Positions 1-44,932 of a stretch of DNA of 64,000 nucleotides are shown here, one piece after another (position 1 is the first letter of the stretch; the number at the start of each line of letters is the position of its first letter). Below the pieces are notes generated by a model. The model searched no databases. It was not told the origin of the DNA and was given only the letters and a program-made list of their open reading frames with translations. Source of the stretch: Oopsacas minuta. Taxonomy: Eukaryota; Animalia; Porifera. A program made the position numbers and the translations under genes. The stretch spans positions 1 to 64,000 of the forward strand of contig JAKMXF010000313.1 of the NCBI GenBank assembly GCA_024704765.1, written 5' to 3'.

Positions 1-789
1 TCCAATCATGAAGGTGCTCCATCAGTAGCACACGCAATAATATTTCCCATTGGTATGTTCTTCTCTTCACAAAATTGCTTTACCACCATAAATATTGTCT
101 CACCTTTAGTATCTGTTTCTAGTGGCTTGGAGAAGAGCATTTCTTCTTTTGATACACCATTGTGAATATATCGTGCATATGCCATAAGTAAGGCTTCATT
201 GTCACGTAAGGTTGACTCATCAAGCTGTAAAGCGAATTCCGTTGTTTGTAAACTTTACACAACTGTTGTTCAACATCTATAGCCAAGTCTTCGATCCTCC
301 TCGAAACTGAGTTATTACTTAAGGGAATTGATCTAACTACACTAGACGCATCTTGATGCATGACAGTAGATATAACCTCTCTTATAGCTGGAAGGATGAG
401 CTTTTCACCTATTGTATGAGGCTTTCCACATTTGGCGATTAAAAGAGATATATTGTAAGAAGCAACAAGACCATCGTCATTTTTAGTAGTAATTTTGTTA
501 ATCATTCCATCTATGGAACTACGATTTGCAAACTGCTTGCTTAAAGTCTGGAAATATTTGAGATCCTTGTCTTTCTTATCAGGGTGTTTCTTCGTCAAAT
601 GGCCGCACATACGTGAAGGTTTCATGCCCTCATTAGAGAACACTTGATTGCAGAGTAAACAAAAGGGTAATTGTTGATTAGTAGGTGAAGCGATGAAGCC
701 AAATTTCAGATAATCTATGGAGTATTGACGGCATTTTTTCTTGGGGTTTTCAGCCATGATTGGATATGCAAGAAAAATCGTGTCTATTA
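1..789 (-). pseudogene. Truncated Buster/ZBED5-like hAT transposase (N-terminal part), a near-identical copy of about 19560-20349
   Basis: ORF 119-802: BED-like FCLLCNQVFSNEGMKPSR..HLTKKH, then KPHTIGEKLILPA and IPLSNNSVSRRI; the frameshifted continuation reads LQLDESTLRDNEALLMAYVRY. It aligns base by base with the element at 18362-20694 and diverges from it at 790. Confidence 0.9.
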
Positions 790-2256
790 CACAGGCCAAC
801 AAAAAAATATTTCTATCTCTTGACTTAGATTGTTGGAGTGTTTTTAGGGTATATCGGGGTTGCTGTATCCGAAAATACTATTAGTTTTGCTGAATTGGCT
901 CTAGTTTTCTAGATATTACACAACCTTAAATTTTAAGGTAATACTACAAATATTTTCGGTTTGTATGTTTATATCAACATTTACAACTATTTGTTCACAA
1001 CATAGAACCTTTTATGGATTCAAAACGCATTAGACGTTGTTGCCTCAATGATCCTGATGTCTTTTGCTATATTTGTGGTGAATATATGGCAAAGGAACAT
1101 CGTTTTAATATTAGAGATGTCACCAAAATAGCTTATCAGGCTTACTTTGGTATTAAATTAGGCGATCAGGATAAGTCATGGAGCCCTCACAAAGTGTGCA
1201 AATATTGCACAGAAACCCTCCGCCTATGGACCCAAGGAAAAGCCAAATCCATGAAGTTTGGGGTACCAATGGTTTGGCGAGAGCCGAAGAACCATCACGA
1301 TGACTGCTACTTCTGCATGGTTAAAATGTCTGGATGGAACCGGCAGAAAAAGAATTCGTGGCATTATCCTGACATACATTCTGCAAGACGGCCAATTCCA
1401 CACTGCAGCGAAATTCAGGTGCCTGTTTTTACGGCCTTACCTGATACTGCGTTTACCGAGGCAATTGATGAATCGTCGGACAGCACTTACAGCAGCAATA
1501 GCTGTAATGAGTTGTTACAGATAAGTAAAGCGGAGCCTTTCACACAGGGGCGGCTCAACGACTTAGTAAGAGACTTAGGCTTGTCAAAAGATGCTTCAGA
1601 GATCCTGGCTTCCCGTCTCAGTGAACACCATGTTCTCCACAGTGAAGCTAAGATAACTAATTACCGACGCAGAGACGAAGAACTTATTCGCTATTTCAGT
1701 GAAGAAGGCGGCTTCGTGTTTTGTAATAACATCCCAGGACTTCTCTCAGCAATGGGACTGTCCCAATACAATCCAAATGAGTGGCGTTTATTTATCGACA
1801 GCTCTAAACGGAGTCTAAAGTGCGTGTTGCTGCATAATGGTAACAAATTTGCCTGTGTTCCGATCTGCCATTCAGTAATCTTGAAAGAGCACTATGCAAC
1901 TGTAAAGATGGTCCTACAAAAGCTGTGTTATGATGAACATAACTGGATCGCGTGTGTGGACTTGAAAATGGTCAATATCCTGTTAGGACAGTAAAGTGGT
2001 TACACTAAATACCCATGCTTTCTTTGTTTGTGGGACAGCAGAGCGGATGAGGTGCACTGGGAAAAGAAGAACTGGCCAGTTCGTCAAAAGATTGCCGTGA
2101 GGGAAAAGAATATCATTAATGAGCCACTAGTTAGCCGTGACCGTATCATCCTACCACCACTACATATCAAGTTGGGACTGATGAAACAATTCGTAAAGGC
2201 ATTGAACAAAGATGGTACCTGTTTCAATTACCTCTGCTCAGTATATCGTGGTCTGA
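790..2256 (+). mobile_element. Chapaev3-like (CMC superfamily) DNA transposon, 5' part, inserted into the hAT copy and cut by the assembly gap
   Basis: Begins CACAGGCCAACAAAAAAAA right after TTA, exactly where homology to the sister hAT copy stops. ORF 1014-1994 has CLNDPDVFCYICGEY, WREPKNHHDDCYFC and FIDSSKRSLKCVLLHNG, then one in-frame TAA and SGYTKYPCFLCLWD..LPPLHIKLGLMKQFVKAL. The family is assigned from recalled motifs; the right TIR is not visible. Confidence 0.65.
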
Positions 2257-2267
2257 NNNNNNNNNNN
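2257..2267. other. Assembly gap (11 N)
   Basis: Run of n in the sequence. Confidence 1.
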
Positions 2268-2384
<117 letters not shown>

Positions 2385-4038
2385 ACATCTATTGTGGACT
2401 TTTCACCTCTCTCAAAATATCCTCACACATATCAAACTAATTCTAAGTAAGAGAAACGATCCGAAACAAAATTGGAACAATATTCTTTAATCTTGGTGGT
2501 CGATTTGTAAGAAGCAGGATGCACTTGCATCCAAGGATTTGAATTAGACTGGAATCGATTAATTGACATCATTGATTCGAACAAAGATTCATTGACTGAA
2601 AAAACCTACAAAGACACGAAAAGGTGGCTTAATTTTTTGTATGAAAGACGTAAACATACACGATTGACCGAAGTCCGAAAAAAAATGGAATATCGACAGA
2701 CTATCTCTGAAAGAAGCGAAGAAAAAGCAACAAGCTTTACTTAGCATCGCATTATAGCATATTTAAGAGAATATTTGACCCCAATTACTATGAATTAGCT
2801 AAAGCACAGATGATAAGATCTATGAATTACTCAATCGACAAATCTTTTAGGTGGAGAATTCATCGGAGAATGAAGAAACCTATTTTCTGAAGAAAATAGT
2901 AGCATCGGATAATGGTTCCAAATTGAACGAACATAATCTTAGTCACCAAGAAGTCATTCTGAATGTGCAGTTAAACGCAGATAATTTAGGACTTATCTCA
3001 GAAACAATAGATCAAAATGATGTTTTATTGAGACATTAAAACACCAATAAATTGTTCTTGTCTCTTTCCAACTTGCTGGGGAATCCCTTGCCGTCAAATT
3101 TTCCGCAGTTACTTAGGGAATAGTCTAAACCATATGCCCAAAGGAGCAATTAGCATGATTCGTATAAAAAAATGAAGAGCGAAAGATTGGACCACTCAAC
3201 CAACGAATTTCTTCAAAATATAATATTGTTCCCTTAGTGTCAACAAACCAATCTAACACCAAAGATGAATGGCATCAAATATTTATGGCAGAGTGTAAAG
3301 AAGTTGCAAGAATCGCTTTTCAAACTCCTGAAAGTGCTAAGAATGTTCAGTTAGAGCTAAGAAAGATGTTCACCTGCGTTTGCACTCGTCGAATGAAGAA
3401 ACTAGCTTAGCATCAAACAACAATATAATCAAGATAAAGAATAGTTTCCAATCCTAAAAAGACACCTGATCGAGGACGACCCCCTCAAAACGAAAGAAAG
3501 GTCGTCACGAAACTGTAAAAAACTATATATTAGGATGAATGCAATATATCTTAGCAAAGTATATAGTTACTCGTTGTAGTTCAATAATTCAATAACAAAC
3601 TATGCTTTTTTCGCTAAGTATTTGTAACATGAGCGTTGAAAGTGACTCTCTAGTTAGATTTTGAGATGTCACCCACTGTATACCCTTGCATTCACAACAA
3701 TTTTATGTATTTAAAAATGTTCATCTCCAATTCGCGTATATTTCATGGAGAGTTAATTCCAGTAATAAGGTACTCACCGTAATTCAAGAAATCAGCTATT
3801 TCATGTTCTATAGAAAGCAAAGCAAGGCTGAAGGCCTTTCTTGATGTATAGTTGATTTTAGGCATGTTTTATCAACTTTAACTTACTGAAACTTATTTCT
3901 ACACCAGTAGTAGCTACTGGAAGAGTGATAGAGATTCTTAAGAGCATAGACAAATTTGGGAATGTCTTTCTAAACAGTGATTTGTCATTTCTTCTAAATT
4001 ATCGGTATAATCAGCAGAATATTGCCATGAATCATCTA

Positions 4039-4460
4039 CAGTCAAACTGGTCTATAACTGTCACAGAAGGGATTGACCAAAAGTGATTATTATATACAGG
4101 TGGCCGCTATAGAGAGGTTGACCGTCATACACTGGTACTATGACGCAGGCGTAAAACGGTCAACTTTATATGAAAGGTGGTAATATAGAGAAGATGGCCT
4201 CTAAGACAAGTGCCCGATTTTTAAGATGATACAGTGGAAGTAGTTAATGATCGCCACTCAAGGGACTTGTCAAAGTAGACTTTATGGGAGCACTATATAA
4301 AGTGGCCGTTAGATATAGGAACTGGCCGTTATAGACAGGTTTAGCGCCAATAAGGGACCAAAAATGGTGGCCGCTATAGAAAGGTCATTATATGGGAAAT
4401 CGGAGGGAACTGGTTTTAGGTGACCGCTATGTGCAGGTGGCAGTTAAGCAGGTTTGACTG
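4039..4460. mobile_element. Tc1/mariner(pogo)-type MITE
   Basis: TA|CAGTCAAAC ... GTTTGACTG|TA, with internal repeats of a GGTGGCCGCTATAG-like motif. Confidence 0.8.
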
Positions 4461-5257
4461 TATATATATTGCACTCAGGGGTGGATAAGGATCTTGTAAG
4501 GGGCTGAGTGAGGAATAATTATTTGGTACGCGAACAAATTTTGAATTTTGACTGCACTGAGGTTGAGTCTGGTGCAAATTGAACTCTAATACAAATAGTC
4601 ATAGGCGTATGGGCAGTTGCGAAAGGAGATTGCTAGAATTTTGACATACTATAATTGTCGCATATTAACGATACAATCTGCCAGGAATCAATACTAGACT
4701 TTTCTTTTCCCAGTGATAGCAGATTAATTAATTAGTGTATTTTGTGTCCGATTAACTTAAAGGAAATATATATATCAAATAAATTTTGACCTGAAGAATA
4801 AAGAATAATAGATAATTCGATAATTTGATAATTCATTATCCTTTATCCGGAATTAGTAAACTTTGTCTTTAAGTTCAAACTGTACGATACTATAGTACAC
4901 AAATGGAATGTACTATAGTATAGTTGAGCTATAATATTTTATCTCTTAAAAACAATGAGTTAACAATTATTAACAATTAGGCTACTCAAGCCTGCGACCA
5001 GTCGCTGTGTAGGCTTCTACTCTAAGTATGATATATAATGTATTATTACTGTAGGACGGCAAAATAGGTTTGAAATCATAGTGAGATTGAATTATAACAA
5101 AAAAGAATATATAGTATATCATTCAAATAGGAATTTCAAGTTACAACATAATTTAGGTGAAATTTAACAAATTTGGGGGGTTAAGGCCCCCAAAGCCCCC
5201 CTTGGCCACGCCCCTGAGCAAGTTCCGTATATTGTGAACCTGAAAAAAATCTTTATA

Positions 5258-6584
5258 CAGGGTGCGTCAAAAGTTCTGCAACAATATTGAAAGCTCTATT
5301 ACAATTCATATATTGGTGCAATCATTTATATAAATGTGGAATAACTATAATATGAGCATCAATAATGAGTAATGTAAGGATTTCTGGCTAAGAAGTTTCA
5401 AATCTCATCCCTTTGGCTTTCAAACAGGACCTGACCCTATTTTGGAATATATTACAGACACGAGCAATTTCCTCTTGGTCTAGATCTTTTCAAGCTCGTT
5501 TTAGAGCACGCTTAAGTGAAGGAATATCATTGTAAGAACGATTATTAACGATAGCTTCCAATCTCTCCCATAAATAATAATCGCATGGGTTGAGATCCGG
5601 ACTTGATGGGGGCCACTCTTCACGTCCTAAAAACGCCGGTACATTGCTTGATAGCCATTGTAGGGTAGATTTAGCAATGTGTGCCGGCGCACCATCCTGT
5701 TGAAATATCCATTTTTCTCCTTTCATAAAGGTTGATCCAATATGCCGAACATATTTATCTAATATAAGGTCTTGATAAACTTTTGCATTGATCTTCGTTC
5801 CTTCTGGGACGAAAACTAAGGGGGTTTTTGCCAATTGAAGATATACCTGCCCAAACCATGACAGATTTAGAATATTGACTCTTCTGAACTGTTCTGAACT
5901 GTTCAGGCATATCCTTCCGTGATATTGAATAAATACACGAATTTTTCGAGTTGTATTTTTCATCAATACTGAAAATCTTCTCATCTGAAAACACAATTCT
6001 CTTAGGGTTGACAGATTTGAGCCAGGTAAGAAGCTTACGACATCTTTGTACCCTCTTGTGAATAACTGTATCAGTTAGAGACCCAGTCTTAGTTCTCTTG
6101 AAGGACTGATATCCCAGGACTTTAGTAACAATTCGCCGAGTCGATGCATTAGAAATCTTGACCCGGGCAGCGATTTTTCAATGGGAAAGGGTCGGATGAC
6201 GAGTCATAGCTGGCGAACTTTCTTCTTGTTCACAGCTGTACAAATAGAGCGCGGACGACCAGATCTTCGCTTATCTGTAATATTGCCAGTCTCCCTGAAG
6301 CGTTTCAAGGTACGCCAGATAAAGGATTTGCCGAATTTCTTTGGATCAAGAGTTTTGAAAATTTGGTTTTGCTCAACACCACTGAGAAATAATTCTATAA
6401 CCGCAACTCTCCTTTGTTCAAGCATGATTTTTAGTTGACATGACACTAGTATCAATCTAAGTGGCTATTATTACTTAAGTACGTATATAGATAATTCAAA
6501 AGGATGCTTAGTATAGAAAATTCATTTAAGGGTTAATATGAAATATTGTAATCAATTTTGTTGCAGAACTTTTGACGCACCCTG
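5258..6584 (-). mobile_element. DD37D (maT-like) Tc1/mariner element with a frameshifted transposase
   Basis: 27-bp TIR CAGGGTGCGTCAAAAGTTCTGCAACAA at both ends and TA TSD. ORF pieces 6204-6455 (HTH; RRSGRPRS), 5755-5994 (FSDEKIF, VWAGIS) and 5490-5996 (FQQDGAPAH..WPPSSPDLNPCDY), with 37 residues counted between the second and third D. Confidence 0.92.
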
Positions 6585-29343: not shown

Positions 29344-30724
29344 GGAGACTTGACACATTGGCAGTGTGAGCAGAGAGGAGAGTGTAGAGCAAGGGTTCAT
29401 ACGAAGGGAATGGAGTAGTGAAGCGTGCGAATGAGCATCTGCATGCACCTGATGTGCAGGCTACGGTCTGCTGTGTGAGATAAAGGCAGGCATCTCGAGG
29501 AAAGCACGAGACACACAGGATGACTCACACCACATAATCGGTGAGGGTATGCTAACAGCATCAGAGGGTACTGCTGCTGCTAAACTACCTAAGCTGGACA
29601 GCCTGAAGCGGACGATACAGCGTCAGCGTGCATGCGTACTATCAGCTCCAGTAGAGCCTACCGCTCTAGCAAAGTTGGTCTACCTGCGAATACCAGCGGA
29701 CAGCCAAGGGGGAACAGTTCCTACTCTATAACTCTGGGGAAGACGATGCACATAGATTCCTCATCTTCGGGACAAGAGGGTACCGCTGGACGCTACAGCA
29801 AAGCAAGATCTGGCTAGCCGATGACACCTTCAAGACGGTGCCTCTCCTCTTCGCCCAGGTGTATGTGGTGCATGGAGTCCACCGAGGATACGATCCTATG
29901 AAGACCGGTCATCTGTTGCGGAGTCTGTTCGTGCTACTGCCCAACAAGACAAAGGATACCAGCCTGAGGATGTGGGAGCAGATCCACCTACTATGTCCTC
30001 TTGCCCAGCCTGAACAGATACTCCTAGACTTTGAGAAGGGCGCAATTAACAGCTTTGAGCATGTCTGGCCTAACACAGTGGTGAAGTGCTGCTTCTTCCA
30101 CCAGACACAGAATACCTGGCGTCATGTGCAGTCTGACTGCACACATAACCGAGAGCTGGCTATGCGCCCCCTTAAGATACCAACCCTTGAATTCGCCCGA
30201 CCAGCAGACGTCCCCGATCTGTTTGAGCAAGTGTCAATGGACCTCCCCCTTACGTCTGAGATAGGCGAGCTAGTCGACTACTTTGAGAGGACGTATATCG
30301 GTCGCACGCTAGCCACTGGACACCATGTAGCGGCGACGTTCCCAATTGGCCTGTGGAACTACCACTTCAGCACGCCATTCGGACTCCCCCGTACAACCAA
30401 CGCCGTAGAGGCATGGCACCGCAGCTTCAATGCCACTGTCGGCTGCCATCACCCACCATATGGAAGTTCCTCCTAGCCCTCAAGCGTGAGCAGGGCCTAG
30501 TGGAGGTGCGGCAGACTAACTACCTTGCTGGGAAGCCGCCAACCAAGCGGAGAAGGTCCCAACAGAGTGAACAAGTGTTGAAGACTCTAGCTGGAGAATA
30601 TTATTCGCCAAATCATACTAAGATGGAGTTCTTGCAGGGTGTACATATCATTTCAGTATGGGAGCGGATAAACATGTTAATCCAAAGTATTATCTCAAAT
30701 CAAATATATTTGAGGACTAGATAA
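29344..30724 (+). pseudogene. FLYWCH-MULE (Mutator) transposase relic, left arm of the palindrome
   Basis: HWQCEQRGECRARVHT..EHLHAP; DDTFKTVPLLFAQVY; DFEKGAINSF; CCFFHQTQ; RTTNAVEAWH. Confidence 0.9.
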
Positions 30725-30745
30725 TATGAAGATTAACATCCGTTC

Positions 30746-32096
30746 TCAGGCTGAGATGGTCTCTACACTTGTATGGAACTTTGTTTTAGTATGATTTGGC
30801 GAATAATATTCTCCAGCTAGAGTCTTCAACACTTGTTCACTCTGTTGGGACCTTCTCCGCTTGGTTGGCGGCTTCCCAGCAAGGTAGTTAGTCTGCCGCA
30901 CCTCCACTAGGCCCTGCTCACGCTTGAGGGCTAGGAGGAACTTCCATATGGTGGGGTGATGGCAGCCGACAGTGGCATTGAAGCTGCGGTGCCATGCCTC
31001 TACGGCGTTGGTTGTACGGGGGAGTCCGAATGGCGTGCTGAAGTGGTAGTTCCACAGGCCAATTGGGAACGTCGCCGCTACATGGTGTCCAGTGGCTAGC
31101 GTGCGACCGATATACGTCCTCTCAAAGTAGTCGACTAGCTCGCCTATCTCAGACGTAAGGGGGAGGTCCATTGACACTTGCTCAAACAGATCGGGGACGT
31201 CTGCTGGTCGGGCGAATTCAAGGGTTGGTATCTTAAGGGGGCGCATAGCCAGCTCTCGGTTATGTGTGCAGTCAGACTGCACATGACGCCAGGTATTCTG
31301 TGTCTGGTGGAAGAAGCAGCACTTCACCACTGTGTTAGGCCAGACATGCTCAAAGCTGTTAATTGCGCCCTTCTCAAAGTCTAGGAGTATCTGTTCAGGC
31401 TGGGCAAGAGGACATAGTAGGTGGATCTGCTCCCACATCCTCAGGCTGGTATCCTTTGTCTTGTTGGGCAGTAGCACGAACAGACTCCGCAACAGATGAC
31501 CGGTCTTCATAGGATCGTATCCTCGGTGGACTCCATGCACCACATACACCTGGGCGAAGAGGAGAGGCACCGTCTTGAAGGTGTCATCGGCTAGCCAGAT
31601 CTTGCTTTGCTGTAGCGTCCAGCGGTACCCTCTTGTCCCGAAGATGAGGAATCTATGTGCATCGTCTTCCCCAGAGTTATAGAGTAGGAACTGTTCCCCC
31701 TTGGCTGTCCGCTGGTATTCGCAGGTAGACCAACTTTGCTAGAGCGGTAGGCTCTACTGGAGCTGATAGTACGCATGCACGCTGACGCTGTATCGTCCGC
31801 TTCAGGCTGTCCAGCTTAGGTAGTTTAGCAGCAGCAGTACCCTCTGATGCTGTTAGCATACCCTCACCGATTATGTGGTGTGAGTCATCCTGTGTGTCTC
31901 GTGCTTTCCTCGAGATGCCTGCCTTTATCTCACACAGCAGACCGTAGCCTGCACATCAGGTGCATGCAGATGCTCATTCGCACGCTTCACTACTCCATTC
32001 CCTTCGTATGAACCCTTGCTCTACACTCTCCTCTCTGCTCACACTGCCAATGCGTCAAATCTCCAACTCTTCGATGCATCAATTGTAGGTAGCCTC
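30746..32096 (-). pseudogene. FLYWCH-MULE transposase relic, right arm of the palindrome; its 5' end continues at 34594-34660 beyond the hAT insertion
   Basis: Reverse complement of 29356-30621 except for one C indel; ORF 30746-31570; joining across the hAT restores MDPDQPSFRLIRTSKGGEKLLEGGYLQLMHRRVGDLTHWQC. Confidence 0.9.
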
Positions 32097-34593
32097 TAGT
32101 GATGTTGAACGAACATCATTTTAAATAATTGGTTATCGAATAGTTAATCCGCAAAGTAACCGATTAATCGGTTATAATCGGTTAAACTCAATTATCATTA
32201 TATTCTGCCTTTAATTGCTAGTACTCTCCTGTATTTTAATTTATCAAATGAAATCAAATTAGATATAATAATGAGCTAATGACTAATAATGAAGAAATCC
32301 TAAAATCTAATAATTTATTGTTACTTTATCTCTTGCTTCTTGAAATATGACTTTAAGATCATTAAGCTATCAACCGAGTTTTCACTCAACCGTGATCTCA
32401 ACTTCGTCACAAAAAGTCCTGCTGCTGAGAAAGCACGTTCTGCCTCAACGCTTGTCGGAGGAATTGTATTCAGTACTTCCTCTATAGAAGAAATATTTGG
32501 GATTTGTCTCCAGTGGCTTCAAATAAGGCCATTTCCTTTATCAGAGATAGAAATCCAATATCTTCTTTCGGGGTTCTTACATGAGTTGTGGAATTTTGTA
32601 TTGCTCTTTTTAATTGGTCAGCAAGTAATATCGGAGAGCTACGTATTTCAACGTCTCCAATGTCTTCCGAAGTCTCCTGAGAATTTAAAATTACACTATC
32701 GAATTGTTCAGTTCCATACTGTGAATACAATTGTGAAAGGATCATTTTCATTGTCTTTTGCACTTCTTTTCTTTTAATACACGGATCCTCCCTTATCGAA
32801 TTAGGATTCAATAAATATTTCATAACATTGATAAGATTAGACTGCCGCCTCTCGTTAAATCTTTGTCTTAGGTTCTGCAATAATTGTAAGGAGAACTCTG
32901 AACCAACCATTTCAAGTTTCTGGAACATAAAATAGAATATCCCTTCTGCACTGAGTAAATTTGCGTCACGCTGGCATAGAGCAGATATTCCCATTTCGAT
33001 GGGTTTTAAACAACTGCAAATGTTTTCCAACTCTTGCCAATCAAGTTCACAAACTTCCATGTTTAAATTGATGTCGATCATTGCTTTGCATAGTGGTTTT
33101 CTTACAGGTAACAATCGATTAATCATACTAATTAAGCTATTCCACCTAGTTTTGCACTCCATGACTAGATTTGAAGTTTTTCCTAAATCTTCCTTTATGT
33201 ACGACTGAAGTACTTCATTTTTTAATGGGGCTTCCTAAATATACGAACGATATTTCGAAACTTAACGATAACAGTTTCTATATTTATTTTCAAAGGCGGG
33301 ATAAACATGTCTTCATCAATTTCACCGTCATCTTCATCTGAGAAAATTGATTCACCCTCAGTATCTTCTGCACCACCAAGGCCATCATTATATGAGTCAG
33401 AGATAGTCGACTGAATTTGAGATGTGCCAATTGGCTCTTCGTCCGTTCCTTCATCATAAATAGGAATCCTATTCTTGGAGTATAATACTGCAACTACTGC
33501 TAAATGTACCCCGTGAGCCAAACAAAGTTGCTGATGAATATTACTTGGTCTTCCCATCTTCACCATGACAGGGGCTCCATCACAGGTGATGCTAACAATA
33601 TGCTTCTGCAACTCAATATAGAATTCAATCAATATCCTTTCCAAAAGCTCAAGAACCTTCTCAGCTGGCATCTTTCCATAAATACGCTTCATTCCAGGGT
33701 TCCAAAAGTTATTGATGCTATGTATATTGACATTCATATACCGTTTATTTTGGATAGAAGTATATTCGTCCAAGTACACGCTCATCCTTTTTCCATTAGC
33801 AAGTAAAAACTGTAACTGAGAAGTGATCACTCCCTTAACATGATTTGCATACCTCAAAACCATTCTTGAAACTGTAGAATGGTCTGGAATTGGGGTGAAA
33901 CCCTTTTCTTGTAACGAAGAACGGATAAATTTACTTTGGCTGATTTTCAGATAACTGAAACAATCCTCAGCAGCTAACCTAGCAATTACCTCATCCAAAC
34001 TTTGTTTTTTGGAAAATAATGGTAACAAACTTTGAGTACTATGTTTCTTCGAAGGGGGTTCGTTGTCAGAAATGTGATTCAGGCCCAATTGGATGTTATG
34101 TATCAAAAGATGATTTCTTAACCCAGTAGTTGTACTGCCTTTACAACTTACATTCTTCTTACAAATAAGGCATTTGGCTTCTTCCCCATGTTTCTCGAAA
34201 TGTTTCCACACCTCAGACCTTTTAGCCATAATACCGTACAGTATTGTAAGTATAGAAGTAACGATTTATAGAAAAGCTAGAATATTCAAAATTATGCTGT
34301 AACAAATGCGTTTACAGATAATTATACATATAAATATGCGTATCGCCGTATGCCTATAAACTACTATATCTAGCAATTAGGTCTCTAGCCGTTAAAACAT
34401 AATTCAAGAATACATAGAATGACAATTGTGTGGTTTTTTAATAATAATTCCAATAGAAACTTTATTGTTGACCAAAAGGTGAAATTTTGAAAATAACCGA
34501 TTAATCGAAGTAGAATAATCGGTTATCGATAATAAGTATAAATTCAATAATCGATTAAATAATCGAATATTTACTAATCGGTTACCATCCCTA
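32097..34593 (-). mobile_element. BED-finger hAT (Ac/ZBED1-like) transposon with a frameshifted transposase
   Basis: Termini TAGGGATGGTAACCG / TAGTGATGTTGAACG; TSD GTAGCCTC/GCAGCCTC; AATCGGTTA subterminal repeats; VWKHF..CLIC..HLLIH, LDEYTS, TCDGA, CLAH, KTRWNS, PPTSVEAERAFS. Confidence 0.93.
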
Positions 34594-34936
34594 GCAGCCT
34601 CCTTCTAGTAACTTCTCTCCTCCCTTACTTGTCCTGATCAGTCGGAAGGAGGGTTGATCAGGGTCCATCAATAATAGGAAAGTTGTTTAGAATACAAATT
34701 GTATTATGATACAAGCTGCAAAATAATACAGTTGCAACATTTAAATAGAGCTATACAGGTGACTTTCCATGTTTACTGGCAAACATACAAATTAATTTCG
34801 ATCTTCTCCCACAATGGAATTAATACTACGTATGCATTCCTGATATAAATTCATTATCTTTAATATATAAATCATCTCACCTCACTTTGCTATCACAGAA
34901 CTTCTATGTATAGGTTTACGATATCAATACTGTAAC

Positions 34937-36365
34937 CATAGACTCCTTAAATAGAAGGACTAGTATCTCCTATGCTCGGGGCCTGGAACTTGGGTCCCAT
35001 CATATCTTGGGTTGTACACATGCTAAAACCTTCATCTTGGTGTCTAACATGGGGTTTTGAGGGACAAGGAATTAATTTTTTATACTTTTGGCCATCTAAA
35101 AGGTCACCTGAAGGTCATTTGAAGGTTAAAACACTCAAAATGGCAGGAATTTATCTAAAATTTTGTGTATTCTTCTAATCAAATGCAGGGTAACGAGACA
35201 AACAGTCAAAATAGTATACATTGTGATTATATATCAAAATGACAGTTTAAATGCTAAAATTAGCACGAATGAATTAATAAGGTCAGTATACAAAGCAAAC
35301 AAAAGGCAAAAATTGCATGTATACACGGATATCACTGTGAACAGGGATATTACTGCAACTTAGTTTTGAGATGAGAGTTTTTCCTTCCTTCTCAAACAGC
35401 CAAGTTGTCTTTCTTTATCACTATTATCAAGCACAAAGGACTTCAAAAGTATGTTTGACAAAGTAACACATGCTCCTTGAATAATAGACATTGCACTGTC
35501 AATACGAGATAAGGCTTGGCTGAGGTGAGCTCGACAGCAGTGTAAATTGCAATTAACAAACAGTTTGTAAGCTGAATGAACGAAATGAACAGTTGAGATT
35601 AGGGGCACAGTTAGTCCACCCCTGTTTAAATTAGTGAGAAACTCCGAATCAGTTAGATTGTCATCATCATCTTCAGCTGAGGCTGTTGGTTGACTGTACA
35701 AAAAGAATCAAAGTCACCAATTTGATCAAGAGCGTTAGTTCTAAGGTCTTCATTTCTGTCACGTACTTCTGCCGAAGAACTTGTACTCCTAGGAGTTGAA
35801 GAGACTTGCTTTAAACAGGACTTTGGGACACCAGAAAAAATGGATGGAGGTTGGCTAGATCGTTTACCACCTTTAACTGTGACCCATTCACAGTCAAAAT
35901 GATGGTAACAAGCATATATTTGTTTAAGTTGTAACAGACTGGAGCGTTCATTTGGCATAGCATCAATCCAACGATCTCGCTCATCTTCATCACTTGGAAA
36001 TTGTACTACTTTTGTGTATGGTTCACACCTGTAATTTCCACGACATCCAAATACGTTACACTTCTTAGGCATTATAAAGTAAATACCACCACCACCTTTA
36101 AAATGCAGTTGTAAATTGGATGATCCCCAGCACCAGAAATGCTGGTAAAGCTACAATACAAACCTGAAAAAACATAATACAGCAGCATGAGCTACGGACA
36201 GCGTCAGGTGACGCCAGGTGACGCCAGGAGCGGCGATAAAGCAAAAGCTTTCCATGACCTGCCATGTTTATTACGCAATGACGTCGTTGCGTCATGATAC
36301 AGTGGGACCCAAGTTCCGTAATCCGAGATTGCCAGATACTAGTCCTTCTATTTAAGGAGTCTATG
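34937..36365 (-). mobile_element. THAP-domain (P-element-like) internal deletion derivative
   Basis: Perfect 32-bp TIR CATAGACTCCTTAAATAGAAGGACTAGTATCT; flanked by TAAC on both sides; ORF 35653-36072 MPKKCNVFGC..FP..W..ACYHHF..P; overlapping frame NRGGLTVP resembles a THAP9/P transposase C-terminus. Confidence 0.85.
35653..36072 (-). CDS. Intact 139-aa THAP zinc-finger protein (transposon-derived)
   Basis: THAP C2CH signature with conserved P, W, F and P residues; open from ATG to stop in both copies. Confidence 0.7.
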   Translation of the reverse strand: MPKKCNVFGCRGNYRCEPYTKVVQFPSDEDERDRWIDAMPNERSSLLQLKQIYACYHHFDCEWVTVKGGKRSSQPPSIFSGVPKSCLKQVSSTPRSTSSSAEVRDRNEDLRTNALDQIGDFDSFCTVNQQPQLKMMMTI

Positions 36366-37609
36366 TAACTAATAATAAATAGCAAAAAACGAATGCATTT
36401 GTAGTTCATCCATGGTCCAGCTTTTTTTGCTGTTTCCATTCCTGATATTGCGTAGTTCACGATAGGACAAATATGAATTAGATAAAATGGAAGAATGATA
36501 AGGTGGGAAAATATACATTATTGAAAGAGTATCTACAAAATGATCCAAATCGTGTTAAGATTCATTACTAATATTATCGAAAGAATATATAAAAGTTAAG
36601 GTTTATTAATATAATAGCCTTCCTTTAATCCATGGTCCAAGTTCACAAAGTTGGTGTATAGGCCTTATTTAACGTAGGTCACGAATCAGTATATATCGAT
36701 TTGATGACTAATACAATTTCGCCCATAGACTTTGGCTTAGTTGTGTATTTGGCTCTAACTTTTCAATTGTGCACCGATTTGAACGTTGTAAAGTGGAATC
36801 TTCATCATTCAGCGAGTACGATCAGACTAGATATGTGAGTTTTATATTTCGGATGAAAAGTTCGGGGGTGCAATTCTATAGTTGTACCCAACTGTTTTGC
36901 AGGTTGTAGAAAACAATTTATGGTCCAACTGTTAAAATACCTGTGTTCATGATGCCACAGAACCCCGATGAACTAAAACATGCATTGTTACGAGCGCTAC
37001 ACAGAGATGATATAGACGAATTGAAAGTGGCGTGCGCGTACTCTAAACATGTTAGAGAAGATAATGTCGAAACAGTACATAAAGTGCCTAACGGAGACGG
37101 AAATTTTCGAGAAATACCACGAACCGTCCTGAGCTGAAAGATGGAACTGTCCCAACTATTCTACCAGAATCTCCGAATTACTATTCATCTCACTCTGCCA
37201 CCAACCGCACCCGTTTCTCTCGAAATGACAGGGATGAAGAACTTCTCTATCAAGCAGTTTCACTAGATCGAGAGTCAGAGGTCGAAGAAATAGAAGTTCA
37301 AAATTCCTTGTTTCCATGATTTACAAGCTAAGTTACCCTTTCTTTCAATTGCTAATACCTGGTCCACCTGGTCGACGAATATACACTATTTTTATGTTCC
37401 TCATATTAATAGTAAAATCTACTATTTTAGATAACGCATCTCATATTGCATCTGCGGAAAGTCAAATCACACAAGTTAGGCCACTGTTAGTTGGAAACTT
37501 TTTTCAGCTCCACCGCCTACATAAAGTTTAACTGCCGCATGAATATTTCATTATTGGAATTTTTTGTCATTATTTCCCATTTCTCAGTGATATTCACCAA
37601 CACAACATA

Positions 37610-38089
37610 CAGTGCCGGTCAAAAAGAATTGCTCAGAATTAATTTATCCCCAAATTCTTATCTCTATGACTGATTTTCACAATAATTTCTTGTCTTTGGT
37701 TGTGACATGAGGCCTACCCGAAATGCGAGGCTTCTTATCGAGTCAATCAGCCTGTGTTTGTTTAGGATCTCGGCTACGCTTTTTTGGCTACACCCAACCA
37801 TTTTGGCCTCTGAGTATGGTCACATTTTGATAGCAGTATCAGGTTGACCCAATTTTAATGGAATTTCGGGGTTTGAGGGCATTGAAAATTCGATAAAACG
37901 GATAGATTGGAAAAAATGAAATTGAGAAGTTGTGCAAATAATGAGTGGAATAGCTGTTGTGGGTGTTACTTGTCAAATATATAGCTGAATATGGTTTCAC
38001 ATGAAGTCAACTATCTGGTGAGTGTATCCAATTTGATATTTACTATACTGTATACATTCATTTTGAGCAATTCCTTTTGACCGGCACTG
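37610..38089. mobile_element. Tc1-type MITE
   Basis: TA|CAGTGCCGGTCAAAAAGAATTGCTCA ... TGAGCAATTCCTTTTGACCGGCACTG|TA. Confidence 0.85.
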
Positions 38090-38644
38090 TATATACTAAC
38101 AAACAGGTGAATAATTGTTCTTTATTAACATTTTCGTAGTATAGTAATTGGAACTGGTCACTTTGTACTATCATAACGTCATACAATAATGAGATAATGA
38201 TAATCAGCCGCCCGCCAGCATGCATATTATTTCGACATCATGTGGAGCTGAAACAAGTTTCTCATTAACATGGGCCTTATTGATGATATGTAAGATCCTG
38301 ATTTTGATGATGATTTGGTCTCCCGTCCTGAAGTTTCAACGCTCCGATTTGTTCTTTGTCAGATTCGAAACAGTCTTGTACCAAAAACAAGCAGAGGTTT
38401 AACGTATTGATGCAGATTTTATCTCTTAAAACTCATCTCATTTCCCCTGCTTCTTACCAGCATCTACAGGAAATATCTTGTCATAGCATTCTAATACACT
38501 AAGGCACTGGAACTGCATGTACCATGGATGGGTTAATCCGCTCAAAGGAGATTTTAGAAAATGTGTAGCATCAAAATATATCATTCTAATGTGCAACAAT
38601 GGCAGGTTCTGAATATGTTATTAACTATCTTAACCCAGTATTAC

Positions 38645-38942
38645 CTAGGGTGCGACCCGTACGGGCTTTATCGTAAATCACGGATTACGGTCCTTTTTCG
38701 ACGGGCCGAAAAAGTCAAAAGGATTAATTTTACAAATGAATGTACTTTAATTTGATTATGAAATTTACCGCATCTTATAACACGGGAATTAAATAAATTC
38801 TCACTTCTTACAGAATACCTTCACCAATTCAGCCAACGGTGTCATAAAATGAACAAATTTATTGAATCGCGGGCTGCCGAGAATACATAAACGGGCCGCG
38901 GGCTTCGATTAACGACCCATGGGCTTTACAGGTCGCACCCAG
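38645..38942. mobile_element. hAT MITE
   Basis: GGGTGCGACC...GGTCGCACCC termini; perfect TSD AGTATTAC. Confidence 0.85.
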
Positions 38943-39696
38943 AGTATTACGCAATCTAACCGCCTAGACTAGATTTAGAGAAACTAGATGTTTATTTACA
39001 ATTCTGAGGTAAATTACAAACAAATCAGCATTTCAACATTCACAAAACAACGTTAAACACCAATAAAAGCAATATCTAGTATCTTCTATTGTAATGGGTA
39101 ATGAGGTTAAGTACGCATCTAGGTAGCATAGGCGCCAATATTAATAACTAATCAGCGCCACGTAAATTAGGAAATTTCCTTCACATCTTTATTATCCTTG
39201 ATAAAGAGCCAAATGGGCGGCCTAGGATCTGGCATATCCGGGGCAGGATTTTCAAACCCCGGGAAAACTCCTATTCTAGTATAGAATCTGGCAGGGGTTG
39301 GAATTTACAAACTCAGAATAAATGCCCCGGTTTCCCCCCCATAGTACTGCCACTTAGTCAAACTCCTACATGGGGTGGTATACAACCAACCAAACCAGTA
39401 GTTGTGGCCGCCCAATATTGGTCGACAAAAGGCGCCTATGCTACGTAGTATCTTTAATGAGCTAAGTACATATCTAGTATCTTTAGTGAAGGTAAATACA
39501 CTTGAGGATAGAGTATACTTACACATCAAGCATAGAATCTTGATTGTACTGAGGTATATTGTGTAGGAATTATGTGAAGGTATTTTGAGTATCATCAAGT
39601 CAACTATAAGAAATAAGTACGAATTAGTTGCTAAATTTTTTAGACTTCGCGACTAATGCATTAAAATTCTTAACTCTCCTTGATAACGGGTGAGCA

Positions 39697-41115
39697 CATA
39701 GACTCCTTAAATAGAAGGACTAGTATCTGGCAATCTCGGATTACGGAACTTGGGTCCCACTGTATCATGACGCAACGACGTCATTGCGTAATAAACATGG
39801 CAGGTCATGGAAAGCTTTTGCTTTATCGCCGCTCCTGGCGTCACCTGACGCTGTCCGTAGCTCATGCTGCTGTATTATGTTTTTTCAGGTTTGTATTGTA
39901 GCTTTACCAGCATTTCTGGTGCTGGGGATCATCCAATTTACAACTGCATTTTAAAGGTGGTGGTGGTATTTACTTTATAATGCCTAAGAAGTGTAACGTA
40001 TTTGGATGTCGTGGAAATTACAGGTGTGAACCATACACAAAAGTAGTACAATTTCCAAGTGATGAAGATGAGCGAGATCGTTGGATTGATGCTATGCCAA
40101 ATGAACGCTCCAGTCTGTTACAACTTAAACAAATATATGCTTGTTACCATCATTTTGACTGTGAATGGGTCACAGTTAAAGGTGGTAAACGATCTAGCCA
40201 ACCTCCATCCATTTTTTCTGGTGTCCCAAAGTCCTGTTTAAAGCAAGTCTCTTCAACTCCTAGGAGTACAAGTTCTTCGGCAGAAGTACGTGACAGAAAT
40301 GAAGACCTTAGAACTAACGCTCTTGATCAAATTGGTGACTTTGATTCTTTTTGTACAGTCAACCAACAGCCTCAGCTGAAGATGATGATGACAATCTAAC
40401 TGATTCGGAGTTTCTCACTAATTTAAACAGGGGTGGACTAACTGTGCCCCTAATCTCAACTGTTCATTTCGTTCATTCAGCTTACAAACTGTTTGTTAAT
40501 TGCAATTTACACTGCTGTCGAGCTCACCTCAGCCAAGCCTTATCTCGTATTGACAGTGCAATGTCTATTATTCAAGGAGCATGTGTTACTTTGTCAAACA
40601 TACTTTTGAAGTCCTTTGTGCTTGATAATAGTGATAAAGAAAGACAACTTGGCTGTTTGAGAAGGAAGGAAAAACTCTCATCTCAAAACTAAGTTGCAGT
40701 AATATCCCTGTTCACAGTGATATCCGTGTATACATGCAATTTTTGCCTTTTGTTTGCTTTGTATACTGACCTTATTAATTCATTCGTGCTAATTTTAGCA
40801 TTTAAACTGTCATTTTGATATATAATCACAATGTATACTATTTTGACTGTTTGTCTCGTTACCCTGCATTTGATTAGAAGAATACACAAAATTTTAGATA
40901 AATTCCTGCCATTTTGAGTGTTTTAACCTTCAAATGACCTTCAGGTGACCTTTTAGATGGCCAAAAGTATAAAAAATTAATTCCTTGTCCCTCAAAACCC
41001 CATGTTAGACACCAAGATGAAGGTTTTAGCATGTGTACAACCCAAGATATGATGGGACCCAAGTTCCAGGCCCCGAGCATAGGAGATACTAGTCCTTCTA
41101 TTTAAGGAGTCTATG
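39697..41115 (+). mobile_element. THAP/P-like deletion derivative, inverted duplicate of 34937-36365
   Basis: Same TIRs and ORFs (39980-40399, 40351-40692); lacks a 10-bp tandem repeat; outer flank is not the TAAC TSD. Confidence 0.88.
39980..40399 (+). CDS. 139-aa THAP protein, duplicate copy
   Basis: Translation identical to 35653-36072. Confidence 0.7.
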   Translation: MPKKCNVFGCRGNYRCEPYTKVVQFPSDEDERDRWIDAMPNERSSLLQLKQIYACYHHFDCEWVTVKGGKRSSQPPSIFSGVPKSCLKQVSSTPRSTSSSAEVRDRNEDLRTNALDQIGDFDSFCTVNQQPQLKMMMTI

Positions 41116-41458
41116 GTTACAGTATTGATATCGTAAACCTATACATAGAAGTTCTGTGATAGCAAAGTGAGGTGAGATGATTTATATATTAAAGATAATG
41201 AATTTATATCAGGAATGCATACGTAGTATTAATTCCATTGTGGGAGAAGATCGAAATTAATTTGTATGTTTGCCAGTAAACATGGAAAGTCACCTGTATA
41301 GCTCTATTTAAATGTTGCAACTGTATTATTTTGCAGCTTGTATCATAATACAATTTGTATTCTAAACAACTTTCCTATTATTGATGGACCCTGATCAACC
41401 CTCCTTCCGACTGATCAGGACAAGTAAGGGAGGAGAGAAGTTACTAGAAGGAGGCTGC

Positions 41459-43955
41459 TAGGGATGGTAACCGATTAGTAAATATTCGATTATTTAATCG
41501 ATTATTGAATTTATACTTATTATCGATAACCGATTATTCTACTTCGATTAATCGGTTATTTTCAAAATTTCACCTTTTGGTCAACAATAAAGTTTCTATT
41601 GGAATTATTATTAAAAAACCACACAATTGTCATTCTATGTATTCTTGAATTATGTTTTAACGGCTAGAGACCTAATTGCTAGATATAGTAGTTTATAGGC
41701 ATACGGCGATACGCATATTTATATGTATAATTATCTGTAAACGCATTTGTTACAGCATAATTTTGAATATTCTAGCTTTTCTATAAATCGTTACTTCTAT
41801 ACTTACAATACTGTACGGTATTATGGCTAAAAGGTCTGAGGTGTGGAAACATTTCGAGAAACATGGGGAAGAAGCCAAATGCCTTATTTGTAAGAAGAAT
41901 GTAAGTTGTAAAGGCAGTACAACTACTGGGTTAAGAAATCATCTTTTGATACATAACATCCAATTGGGCCTGAATCACATTTCTGACAACGAACCCCCTT
42001 CGAAGAAACATAGTACTCAAAGTTTGTTACCATTATTTTCCAAAAAACAAAGTTTGGATGAGGTAATTGCTAGGTTAGCTGCTGAGGATTGTTTCAGTTA
42101 TCTGAAAATCAGCCAAAGTAAATTTATCCGTTCTTCGTTACAAGAAAAGGGTTTCACCCCAATTCCAGACCATTCTACAGTTTCAAGAATGGTTTTGAGG
42201 TATGCAAATCATGTTAAGGGAGTGATCACTTCTCAGTTACAGTTTTTACTTGCTAATGGAAAAAGGATGAGCGTGTACTTGGACGAATATACTTCTATCC
42301 AAAATAAACGGTATATGAATGTCAATATACATAGCATCAATAACTTTTGGAACCCTGGAATGAAGCGTATTTATGGAAAGATGCCAGCTGAGAAGGTTCT
42401 TGAGCTTTTGGAAAGGATATTGATTGAATTCTATATTGAGTTGCAGAAGCATATTGTTAGCATCACCTGTGATGGAGCCCCTGTCATGGTGAAGATGGGA
42501 AGACCAAGTAATATTCATCAGCAACTTTGTTTGGCTCACGGGGTACATTTAGCAGTAGTTGCAGTATTATACTCCAAGAATAGGATTCCTATTTATGATG
42601 AAGGAACGGACGAAGAGCCAATTGGCACATCTCAAATTCAGTCGACTATCTCTGACTCATATAATGATGCCCTTGGTGGTGCAGAAGATACTGAGGGTGA
42701 ATCAATTTTCTCAGATGAAGATGACGGTGAAATTGATGAAGACATGTTTATCCCGCCTTTGAAAATAAATATAGAAACTGTTATCGTTAAGTTTCGAAAT
42801 ATCGTTCGTATATTTAGGAAGCCCCATTAAAAAATGAAGTACTTCAGTCGTACATAAAGGAAGATTTAGGAAAAACTTCAAATCTAGTCATGGAGTGCAA
42901 AACTAGGTGGAATAGCTTAATTAGTATGATTAATCGATTGTTACCTGTAAGAAAACCACTATGCAAAGCAATGATCGACATCAATTTAAACATGGAAGTT
43001 TGTGAACTTGATTGGCAAGAGTTGGAAAACATTTGCAGTTGTTTAAAACCCATCGAAATGGGAATATCTGCTCTATGCCAGCGTGACGCAAATTTACTCA
43101 GTGCAGAAGGGATATTCTATTTTATGTTCCAGAAACTTGAAATGGTTGGTTCAGAGTTCTCCTTACAATTATTGCAGAACCTAAGACAAAGATTTAACGA
43201 GAGGCGGCAGTCTAATCTTATCAATGTTATGAAATATTTATTGAATCCTAATTCGATAAGGGAGGATCCGTGTATTAAAAGAAAAGAAGTGCAAAAGACA
43301 ATGAAAATGATCCTTTCACAATTGTATTCACAGTATGGAACTGAACAATTCGATAGTGTAATTTTAAATTCTCAGGAGACTTCGGAAGACATTGGAGACG
43401 TTGAAATACGTAGCTCTCCGATATTACTTGCTGACCAATTAAAAAGAGCAATACAAAATTCCACAACTCATGTAAGAACCCCGAAAGAAGATATTGGATT
43501 TCTATCTCTGATAAAGGAAATGGCCTTATTTGAAGCCACTGGAGACAAATCCCAAATATTTCTTCTATAGAGGAAGTACTGAATACAATTCCTCCGACAA
43601 GCGTTGAGGCAGAACGTGCTTTCTCAGCAGCAGGACTTTTTGTGACGAAGTTGAGATCACGGTTGAGTGAAAACTCGGTTGATAGCTTAATGATCTTAAA
43701 GTCATATTTCAAGAAGCAAGAGATAAAGTAACAATAAATTATTAGATTTTAGGATTTCTTCATTATTAGTCATTAGCTCATTATTATATCTAATTTGATT
43801 TCATTTGATAAATTAAAATACAGGAGAGTACTAGCAATTAAAGGCAGAATATAATGATAATTGAGTTTAACCGATTATAACCGATTAATCGGTTACTTTG
43901 CGGATTAACTATTCGATAACCAATTATTTTAAAATGATGTTCGTTCAACATCACT
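41459..43955 (+). mobile_element. BED-finger hAT, inverted duplicate of 32097-34593
   Basis: Same ORFs (41823-42830, 42890-43570) with the same lesions; ends CATCACT|T, without the terminal A or the outer TSD. Confidence 0.92.
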
Positions 43956-44123
43956 TTTATACACCCGTTATTAACATTCTTAATTTACCTACTCATATTT
44001 GTATTGTATTTTCTACCATAGTATATTCATAATAATACGTATTTTACTTTTCAATATCATTTCTAAATTATTGAACATAAAAATATCATATCTGACCCAA
44101 TATACATATTGAACAATCGCCTT

Positions 44124-44776
44124 GGTGACGCTGCATTTGTCAGAATTTTGAGTTCTGGCCTTGTCAGAATGGTCTTATCGAGTTTGGATTTTGTTAGAAT
44201 AGTTTTTATCGAGTTTTGACTTTGTCAGAATGGTTTTTACTGTGCTTTGATTTGTGAGAATCAATTTTGTATTTTGATTTAAAGCTAGGATGGAATCATG
44301 ACAGGATATTTCTTGGATTGGCTATCAATTTGGTTATATCAGTAGTTGATCGGGGATTTGAACACGAACTAAATGGTGATCGAATGTTTTTCTTCTATTA
44401 GTTATATCAAGGTCTGGAGTATGAGATATGATGCTTTAAATGAATGAAAAGAAGAAGACAGGGTTTTTAACTGTCATTAGTGTTGTTGGAACCGACTGTA
44501 ATTGTGTCTAGGTGTTTCTATCTTTGGAGAATTTGAGATCAGGTATTTTTTCCGAATTGTTACTCGGTTCTAACAGTGTTTCTTTGTTTTCTAAGAAACT
44601 ATCTTTTTCAAAACAATAACAACTAAATCGTGTCGAAACATGATGCTAAAATTACTTCTCCCAAATCGGAGCACAATACACTCGATAAAAACCATTTTGA
44701 CAAAGTCAAATTTCGATAAATACTATTCTGACGAAGTCAGAACTCGATAAAAACCATTCTGACAAACGCAGGCACC
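44124..44776. mobile_element. MITE with tandem subterminal repeats
   Basis: GGTG..CTGC.TTTGTCAGAAT terminus and its reverse complement; repeated TTGTCAGAATGGTTTTTATCGAG motifs in inverted orientation at the two ends. Confidence 0.75.
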
Positions 44777-44932
44777 CCATAGCCTTCCTTAATCCATAGT
44801 CCAAGTTCACAAAGTTGGTGCATAGGCCTTATTAGTAGGTCACGGCTCTGTATATTCATTGCTAGCAAAATCCCAAAAACTTGCATAAGCCATGGAAACT
44901 GTCAACAGACAGATCGAGCAAATTTTCCTTTA

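Follow-up and report, generated by a model that had tools for sequence, protein, structure and literature searches.

An Inverted Duplication in the Sponge Oopsacas minuta with Its Ends at the Tips of a hAT and a P-Superfamily Transposon: Most Likely a Scar of Break Repair

How can a single duplication have its two ends at the tips of transposons from two different superfamilies? The question is raised by the first 64 kb of contig JAKMXF010000313.1 (C313, 411 kb) in the genome assembly of the glass sponge Oopsacas minuta (61.46 Mb in 365 contigs). This stretch is called the window below, and its numbering is used throughout. A block of about 4.3 kb occurs in it twice in opposite orientation, limited on one side by the tip of a hAT element, H, and on the other by the tip of a P-superfamily element, E. 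Here, we analyze the junctions of the two copies and weigh the explanations that could account for them. We will argue that the structure is most likely a repair scar at the transposon tips, which would make the locus a variant of known transposon-associated rearrangements and not the product of a new transposition mechanism.

The block was delimited by means of a repeat search and a global alignment. Positions 32098-36366 are the reverse complement of 39696-43955, with a spacer of 3.33 kb between them, which confirms in the assembly the inverted duplication claimed in a preliminary description of this DNA. In the repeat search, the duplication is made up of two pairs of arms, 32119-36218 / 39834-43933 (4100 nt, 100% complementary) and 36212-36366 / 39696-39850 (155 nt, 99% complementary). 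The alignment reveals only three differences between the copies inside 32098-36366: a 1-bp indel in an A-run (32123 / 43930), a C/G substitution (33382 / 42670), and a 10-bp tandem unit (36205-36214) that has no counterpart in the right copy. The earlier placement of both homology ends within 1 nt of a hAT terminus and of a P-superfamily terminus is likewise borne out. The left limit is 32098, the terminal T of the hAT element at 32097 being outside the shared sequence, and the right limit is 36366, the last base of E at 36365 being one base inside. No third copy of the block is found in the 61-Mb assembly, where it is present as these two copies only; other copies of the hAT element are at most 97% identical, and other copies of E at most 98%.

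The left hAT element, H (32097-34593), has its transposase open reading frames (ORFs) on the minus strand. Its terminal inverted repeats (TIRs), TAGTGATG... and ...CATCCCTA, read TAGTG... and TAGGG... (reverse complement) at the two ends and fit the YARNG type, the consensus of short hAT TIRs. The encoded protein contains a zf-BED domain (Pfam, E-value 1.7e-8), has no Pfam match for its C-terminal domain, and has no sequence match in the PDB. In an Atlas feature search, the 226-aa C-terminal ORF was found to be nearest to the hAT-like_RNase-H / Dimer_Tnp_hAT clusters (0.95, 183 shared features). Five other copies of the family are 95-97% identical, each with its own 8-bp target-site duplication (TSD), for which 6-8 of the 8 positions match. 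H combines three hallmarks of the hAT superfamily, i.e., an 8-bp TSD, YARNG-type TIRs, and a BED finger together with an RNase-H-like/dimerisation region. At another locus of the genome (C295:224437-229836), the terminal region of a hAT and no less than 20 bp of the adjoining flank occur twice in tandem, at positions 852 and 1472, with a period of 620 bp.

H resides in a MULE-like element, X, whose 2.7-kb palindromic core (29344-32064) lies directly to the left. The left TSD copy GTAGCCTC (32089-32096, plus strand) has its partner GCAGCCTC at 34594-34601. In the copy of X on contig C77, the GTAGCCTC-type 8-mer is present once, and the sequence left of 32096 runs directly into that from 34594 onward. 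Because X is continuous across the site in this copy, with a single 8-mer, the left H is a plain native insertion in X, and the view that the left hAT element keeps its native TSD is thereby upheld. The sequence between H and E had been regarded as 343 bp of unique DNA, which it is not: it consists of the hAT TSD copy followed by 335 bp of the repeat family X (34602-34936, plus strand). For the X segment, the genome contains about 30 or more matches of 70-85% identity. The inverted counterpart in the right copy, as aligned with the left one, is at 41116-41458 on the minus strand and includes the hAT TSD copy at 41451-41458.

It is important to note that X does not end naturally where E begins. 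The continuation of X is cut off at ...ACTGTAAC, whereas other X copies run past this point, with ATTAGATTC... after ACTGTAAC and ATTAGATTCTTC... past the cut. All six of the other X copies examined continue as ...ACTGTAAC|ATTAGATTCTTCTGAAATC..., in C77 for about 150 bp, while X in the window stops at the first base of E.

Element E (34937-36365, minus strand) is a deleted, non-autonomous member of the P superfamily, 1.43 kb in length, with 73-bp TIRs and a retained THAP exon. THAP is the only domain in it (Pfam, E-value 3.6e-7). Full-length relatives are found in C222 (3.3 kb) and in C188 (6.1 kb, with a nested insertion), and these have THAP (1.5e-6), TNP-like RNaseH_N (2.6e-8) and GBD (1.4e-4, just under the Pfam cut-off) domains. 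The set of domains characteristic of the P superfamily, i.e., THAP, a TNP-like RNase H and a GTP-binding insertion domain, is thus present in the full-length relatives of E, and also in a second family, B, that is discussed below. The E family makes 8-bp TSDs, perfect in 4 of 4 other copies, and the 8-bp flanks of the left E, ACTGTAAC and TAACTAAT, do not match each other. The tetranucleotide TAAC, previously taken as the TSD of this element, can accordingly be dismissed. The right copy, E' (39697-41115, plus strand), has one 10-bp tandem unit fewer, a derived condition, and its free flank is TGCTCACC; neither copy of E in the window has a matching pair of flanks. The X|E boundary is a TSD-less junction located exactly at the E tip and, being common to both copies, it is older than the duplication. 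Since X is cut at the left tip of E, this element had already been joined to X in an earlier rearrangement. Both transposon families look recently active, E because the TSDs of the family are perfect (8/8) and its full-length copies have long transposase ORFs, and the hAT family because of its high identity and its TSDs.

Two further observations concern the E family elsewhere in the genome. In C339, a left and a right terminus face each other across 10.9 kb (214125-214453 and 225366-225554) as everted ends, which may be another scar of aberrant transposition. In the full-length element of C188 (509750-516200), a nested 539-aa ORF at positions 3171-4790 encodes an integrase core (rve) and an OTU cysteine protease domain.

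We now turn to the right copy, in which the order of the elements is reversed and the hAT element points outward. The right hAT element, H' (41459-43955, plus strand), carries the derived base at the C/G substitution and the ancestral A4 run, and the base that should end its TIR, at 43956, is either lost or altered. The outer TIR reads CATCACT|T instead of CATCACTA, while the terminal T/A is present in the left copy and in 5 of 5 other copies. The outer flanks of the right copy, GGTGAGCA and TTTATACA, are unmatched, in line with the earlier statement that this copy has no outer TSD. From this the whole right copy had been called the derived one. That assignment stands for the hAT junction, which is derived because the left hAT is in its native site; the left THAP element, for its part, has no native TSD.

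The sequence beyond H' belongs to B, a second P-superfamily family, whose elements are 3.56 kb long and have TIRs of 72 bp; the 61 Mb contain about 10 copies of it. The reference copy is C323:306500-311400, positions 713-4275; its domains are THAP (1.3e-3), RNaseH_N (4.9e-7) and GBD (2e-3), and two intact copies have TSDs with 5-6 of 8 positions matching. The piece next to H', called Pl, is the 3'-terminal part of B (43960-44844, plus strand; reference B 939 to 713). It is present as 43960-44123 and 44779-44844, split by a 655-bp miniature inverted-repeat transposable element (MITE) of a multi-copy family in the genome (44124-44778). The homology of Pl to B starts at 43960, four bases right of 43955, and B is cut internally, at about position 939, at the H' junction. 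At least 300 bp upstream of the cut are conserved in 8 of 8 other B copies fetched, and this sequence is absent from contig C313. A reciprocal B junction was not found anywhere in the genome, and at least 3.1 kb of the B interior is absent from the window. The right copy is consequently not a simple insertion, a possibility that is rejected on two grounds, namely that its flanks are contiguous in no relative and that B is truncated. It replaces at least 3.1 kb of B and a further stretch. Regarding B itself, we note that the core TTAAATA is common to its TIR and that of the E family, and that the insertion sites of B follow a palindromic pattern in which 8 variable bases are followed by a TATA-like sequence.

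A second piece of B, Pr, is found on the other side of the spacer, 95 bp right of the left copy. It is the 5'-terminal 223 bp of the element (36461-36683, plus strand; reference B 4041-4275), with the terminus at 36683 and an internal cut at 36461. It is inverted relative to Pl, and the two B pieces are 7.3 kb apart. Taken as a TSD, their flanks AATCAGTA and TACAGAGC match at only 1 of 8 positions, compared to 5-6 in the intact copies, so that the two pieces are probably from different insertions. For the same reason, the idea that an inversion split a single insertion and left them as its two ends is disfavoured.

The 95 bp between the E tip and the truncated B piece (segment f, 36366-36460) have no other match in the genome and may be filler. 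Segment f contains two exact matches of at least 12 nt, to B and to the X segment, which has a probability of about 0.013 when compared with random 95-mers of the window. Nested MITEs occupy 37478-38277 in the rest of the spacer (36684-39695), which consists of unique sequence from about 38100 onward. The nested MITEs have inverted repeats of 41 nt and 36 nt, and each comes from a multi-copy family of the genome. Over its last 1.6 kb, the spacer is unique sequence without any relation to B. We also considered whether the end of the spacer could be the missing upstream part of B, but the local alignment scores of 67-68 are to be compared with a mean of 61 and a maximum of 79 for shuffled sequence, and the idea was rejected. 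There is, however, a short match between the two junctions of the right copy. Within the last ca 20 nt of the spacer is ATAACGGGTG (39683-39692); its reverse complement is found in B at 43962-43971, six nt from the outer junction. An inverted match of at least 10 nt in 30-nt flanks was found in 3 of 4000 random pairs of positions.

With the junctions in hand, it can be asked whether transposition could have made the right copy. A composite transposon should arrive with intact termini and a single TSD, whereas here the flanks are GGTGAGCA and TTTATACA and the hAT terminal base is gone. It should also leave an intact target and could be expected in further copies, whereas B is truncated and the unit is found in two copies only. 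Alternative transposition of the hAT element should be recognizable by swapped or inverted 8-bp TSDs, whereas the left element has its native pair and the outer flank of the right one is without a partner. In view of the missing TSD, the damaged terminus, the deleted target and the absence of further copies, canonical composite transposition is not supported. The cross-family version of it, offered as one option in the preliminary description, meets the same obstacles: the right copy has no TSD, the tip of H' is one base short, and B is deleted internally. Template switching at the TIRs, which was also proposed there, or repair may still apply. Several other scenarios could be discarded. A macrotransposon bounded by two outward hAT ends disagrees with the different flanks GTAGCCTC and TTTATACA, and an inversion by recombination between inverted E copies does not fit the pattern of the TSDs. 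We also looked by eye for a cryptic end of one type at the tip of the other, hAT-like at E or E-like at the hAT element, and saw no similarity. Finally, the reciprocal junction of the right end of E with ACTGTAAC is absent from the genome.

The explanation that we favour, tentatively and with somewhat less than even confidence, is a one-off rearrangement in which a single break-and-repair event, completed by end-joining, generated both the inverted duplication and the deletion, with its ends set at the two transposon tips. In the starting state, H was in X, and E was adjacent to it after the earlier event that cut X at the left tip of E. A break would then have occurred ca 3-7 kb to the right, inside B at about position 939, and would have been repaired with an inverted copy of H, the X segment and E. 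As this copy starts at the right tip of E and ends at the outer tip of H, the tips may at that time have been DNA ends or barriers to replication, either because the transposase of each element had cut or nicked it there, or because of hairpins formed from the TIRs (73-bp). The joins would have been made by end-joining or short templated synthesis, not by transposase integration, with loss of the 5' part of B and a further stretch. Later, one and two private mutations could have arisen on the two copies, or near-identity could have been kept by conversion from arm to arm.

This break-and-repair scheme accounts for the position of both copy ends within 1 nt of transposon termini, and also for the repair-like character of the joins, i.e., the lack of a TSD at the right copy, the loss of the last base from the H' tip, and the truncation of B without a reciprocal junction. 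The inverted ATAACGGGTG match is suggestive of a tie between the two right-copy junctions in one event and, together with the patchwork of segment f, it is suggestive of repair synthesis. TSD-less junctions exactly at transposon tips are found three times within 12 kb, and their recurrence at E (X|E and E'|spacer) fits the same picture. Several points weigh against it. Both the ATAACGGGTG match and the patchwork were noticed post hoc and are of modest significance. Two unrelated elements would have had to supply an end simultaneously, a coincidence for which the scheme has only an assumption to offer. The structure is, moreover, known from the sequence of one assembly, and since this is a hybrid de Bruijn assembly, the assembler has in part decided both the near-perfect identity and the direction in which the spacer points. 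While the anatomy of the junctions is directly visible, the order of the events and the cause of the breaks are what we infer from it.

The last of these points leads to the question of whether there are two real copies at all. The genome was assembled from Illumina reads and Canu-corrected PacBio reads with SPAdes 3.9 (k up to 99), followed by SSPACE scaffolding, Pilon and GapFiller, and it was sequenced without whole-genome amplification (PMC10280926). A chimera from multiple displacement amplification can thus be excluded, this method not having been used for the assembly (PMC10280926). In a de Bruijn graph, a two-copy repeat is one edge that is traversed twice, and the perfect identity of the arms is for this reason weak evidence of recency. 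An artefact could have arisen if the edge of the block was threaded twice by mistake, or if near-identical hAT and P-type copies were connected by the path of the left locus; the orientation of the spacer may be arbitrary as well. We regard this as unlikely, although it has to be taken seriously. The pipeline (hybrid SPAdes with k up to 99, SSPACE with 15-bp merging, Pilon, GapFiller) could produce such an error, and even old inverted repeats tend towards exactly matching arms in this assembly, those of the X palindromes being 100% identical within a locus while the loci differ by 10-13%. On the other hand, the junction sequences themselves must be in the reads, and the three differences carry information on the two copies. 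Compared to the other family members, the left A3 run is derived and the right A4 ancestral, the left C is ancestral and the right G derived, and the two tandem units on the left are ancestral and the single one on the right derived. With derived states on both copies, they must be two distinct molecules and not a chimeric read of present-day left-copy DNA: B and X are joined to hAT ends that belong to two different molecules. Only 26 bp separate the A3/A4 site from the outer junction of each copy, a distance that fits in a single k-mer or read, and it is the ancestral state that the right copy shows. The derived states are still compatible with a threading error that connected two genuine junctions wrongly. 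However, the assembly contains no further hAT copy of more than 97% identity, no further E copy of more than 98%, and no alternative flank, the locus is located 32-44 kb inside a 411-kb contig, and a 4.3-kb repeat is within reach of PacBio reads. An alternative haplotig with the un-rearranged site was not found, the unique part of the spacer matching only itself.

If the duplication is real, other histories than break and repair have to be considered. One is that the block was freed from the sister chromatid by simultaneous hAT and P-type cuts and captured in inverted orientation at a nearby break, giving a product that could act as a dual killer locus silencing both families; this we find rather doubtful. 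Improbable, in our opinion, is a sequence of two hAT-driven steps, in which a sister-chromatid twin inversion would have put an inverted hAT in B and turned round all that lay between, and repair synthesis templated by the right copy would later have lengthened the repeat on the left through X and E, in place of the B interior. It would explain why the pieces of the low-copy B (about 10 copies) lie 7.3 kb apart and mutually inverted, as one breakpoint in B predicts, and why the right hAT has a native inner flank, a new outer flank in B, and an outward end. But the flanks of the B pieces, AATCAGTA and TACAGAGC, match at 1 of 8 positions and are not a TSD pair, the inner flank of the left hAT is its native TSD instead of a swapped one, the inverted match of 10 nt beside the inner junction would have to be fortuitous, and a second event or a stop of synthesis exactly at the E tip is still needed. 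Quite improbable is also that a hAT element and an E element inserted independently nearby in the matching order, and that the 343 bp between them were subsequently transferred from the left locus, by gene conversion or by a double crossover. Identity limits at transposon termini would follow without any unusual chemistry, and hAT and P elements do hop locally. This history nevertheless requires two local hops that happened to reproduce both order and orientation, and a second E identical in its deletion to the one on the left, a derivative that is otherwise unique. One would expect an intact hAT tip with B continuing beyond it; the flanks contain no two halves that could form a TSD, the B fragment beside the left copy is unaccounted for, and the right-copy junctions show repair-type filler or deletions instead of clean TIR-plus-TSD halves. 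The least probable history, to which we give very little credence, is that hAT and P-type transposases together cut the block from the sister chromatid and re-inserted it as a unit. It would place both ends at the exact cut sites of the respective transposases, and both superfamilies make 8-bp staggered cuts in the target. Yet there is no TSD, H' lacks its terminal base, the target has a multi-kb deletion, no second unit with one hAT end and one P end is found in the genome, and we know of no mechanism for pairing the ends of two superfamilies.

Returning to break and repair, it is instructive to compare the locus with known systems. In Drosophila, aberrant events of the P element include hybrid element insertion as well as losses and duplications of flanking DNA whose starting point is precisely a P end. 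The likeness is in the junctions exactly at a P-type terminus at which the element is kept and the TSD lost (X|E and E'|spacer); the difference is that those events involve two ends of one family, while the partner limit here belongs to a hAT element. In maize, alternative transposition of hAT elements followed by repair gives inverted transposon duplications with outward-facing termini (bioRxiv 10.1101/2020.01.07.897926), and sister-chromatid transposition, reversed-ends transposition and composite insertions through re-replication have been described for Ac/Ds (PMC4270019; bioRxiv 10.1101/2020.01.07.897926). The closest parallel in the literature is this alternative transposition in maize when aborted re-replication and fusion of ends come after it. 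The Ac/Ds products and the present locus have in common an inverted duplication of a transposon with flanking DNA, an outward hAT terminus, repair-joined inner ends, and a deletion. They differ in that both ends are hAT ends in maize and the new junction has an 8-bp TSD and an intact TIR, while the sponge locus has one hAT end that lacks its last base and has no TSD, and its other limit is a P-superfamily tip. The maize loci Mu killer and Ac killer are inverted transposon duplications that trigger silencing (10.1101/2020.01.07.897926). Like them, the present block is a long inverted repeat over transposase-coding parts of active DNA transposons; unlike them, it would span two superfamilies at once.

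If confirmed by reads, the locus would be a natural segmental inverted duplication with its ends set by tips from two superfamilies, a case in which two families each supply one boundary. It would add an animal from an early branch to the range of transposon-end rearrangements, most of which are known from Ac/Ds in maize and P in Drosophila, and with three tip-exact TSD-less junctions in 12 kb it offers a compact place to study the repair of broken transposon ends in sponges. Should the dual cuts considered above be true, they would constitute a cross-superfamily route to segmental inverted duplication, and a 4.3-kb hairpin-forming repeat over the starts of the hAT and P-type transposase genes could seed small-RNA silencing of both families. 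If, on the contrary, it is not confirmed, the locus is a warning about repeat threading in this hybrid assembly, which is widely used.

Some details can be added about the palindromic core of the host element X. The outer arms, 29344-30454 and 30954-32064, are 100% complementary, and the inner arms, 30452-30631 and 30776-30955, are 98% complementary. A MULE transposase domain is found on both arms with a score just under the Pfam cut-off. The MULE ORF is 274 aa on the right arm and is split into 212 and 123 aa on the left one, where a difference in a C-run, CCC vs CCCC (30452-30456 vs 30952-30956), breaks the frame in this arm only. A second X palindrome is present in C77:161500-169000 (positions 1838-5621), with arms of 1789 nt that are 100% identical. 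The arms are identical within each locus (over 1111 nt in the window), and yet the loci are 10-13% apart, which suggests that the arms have been homogenised, either by conversion or by collapse of the graph in the assembly.

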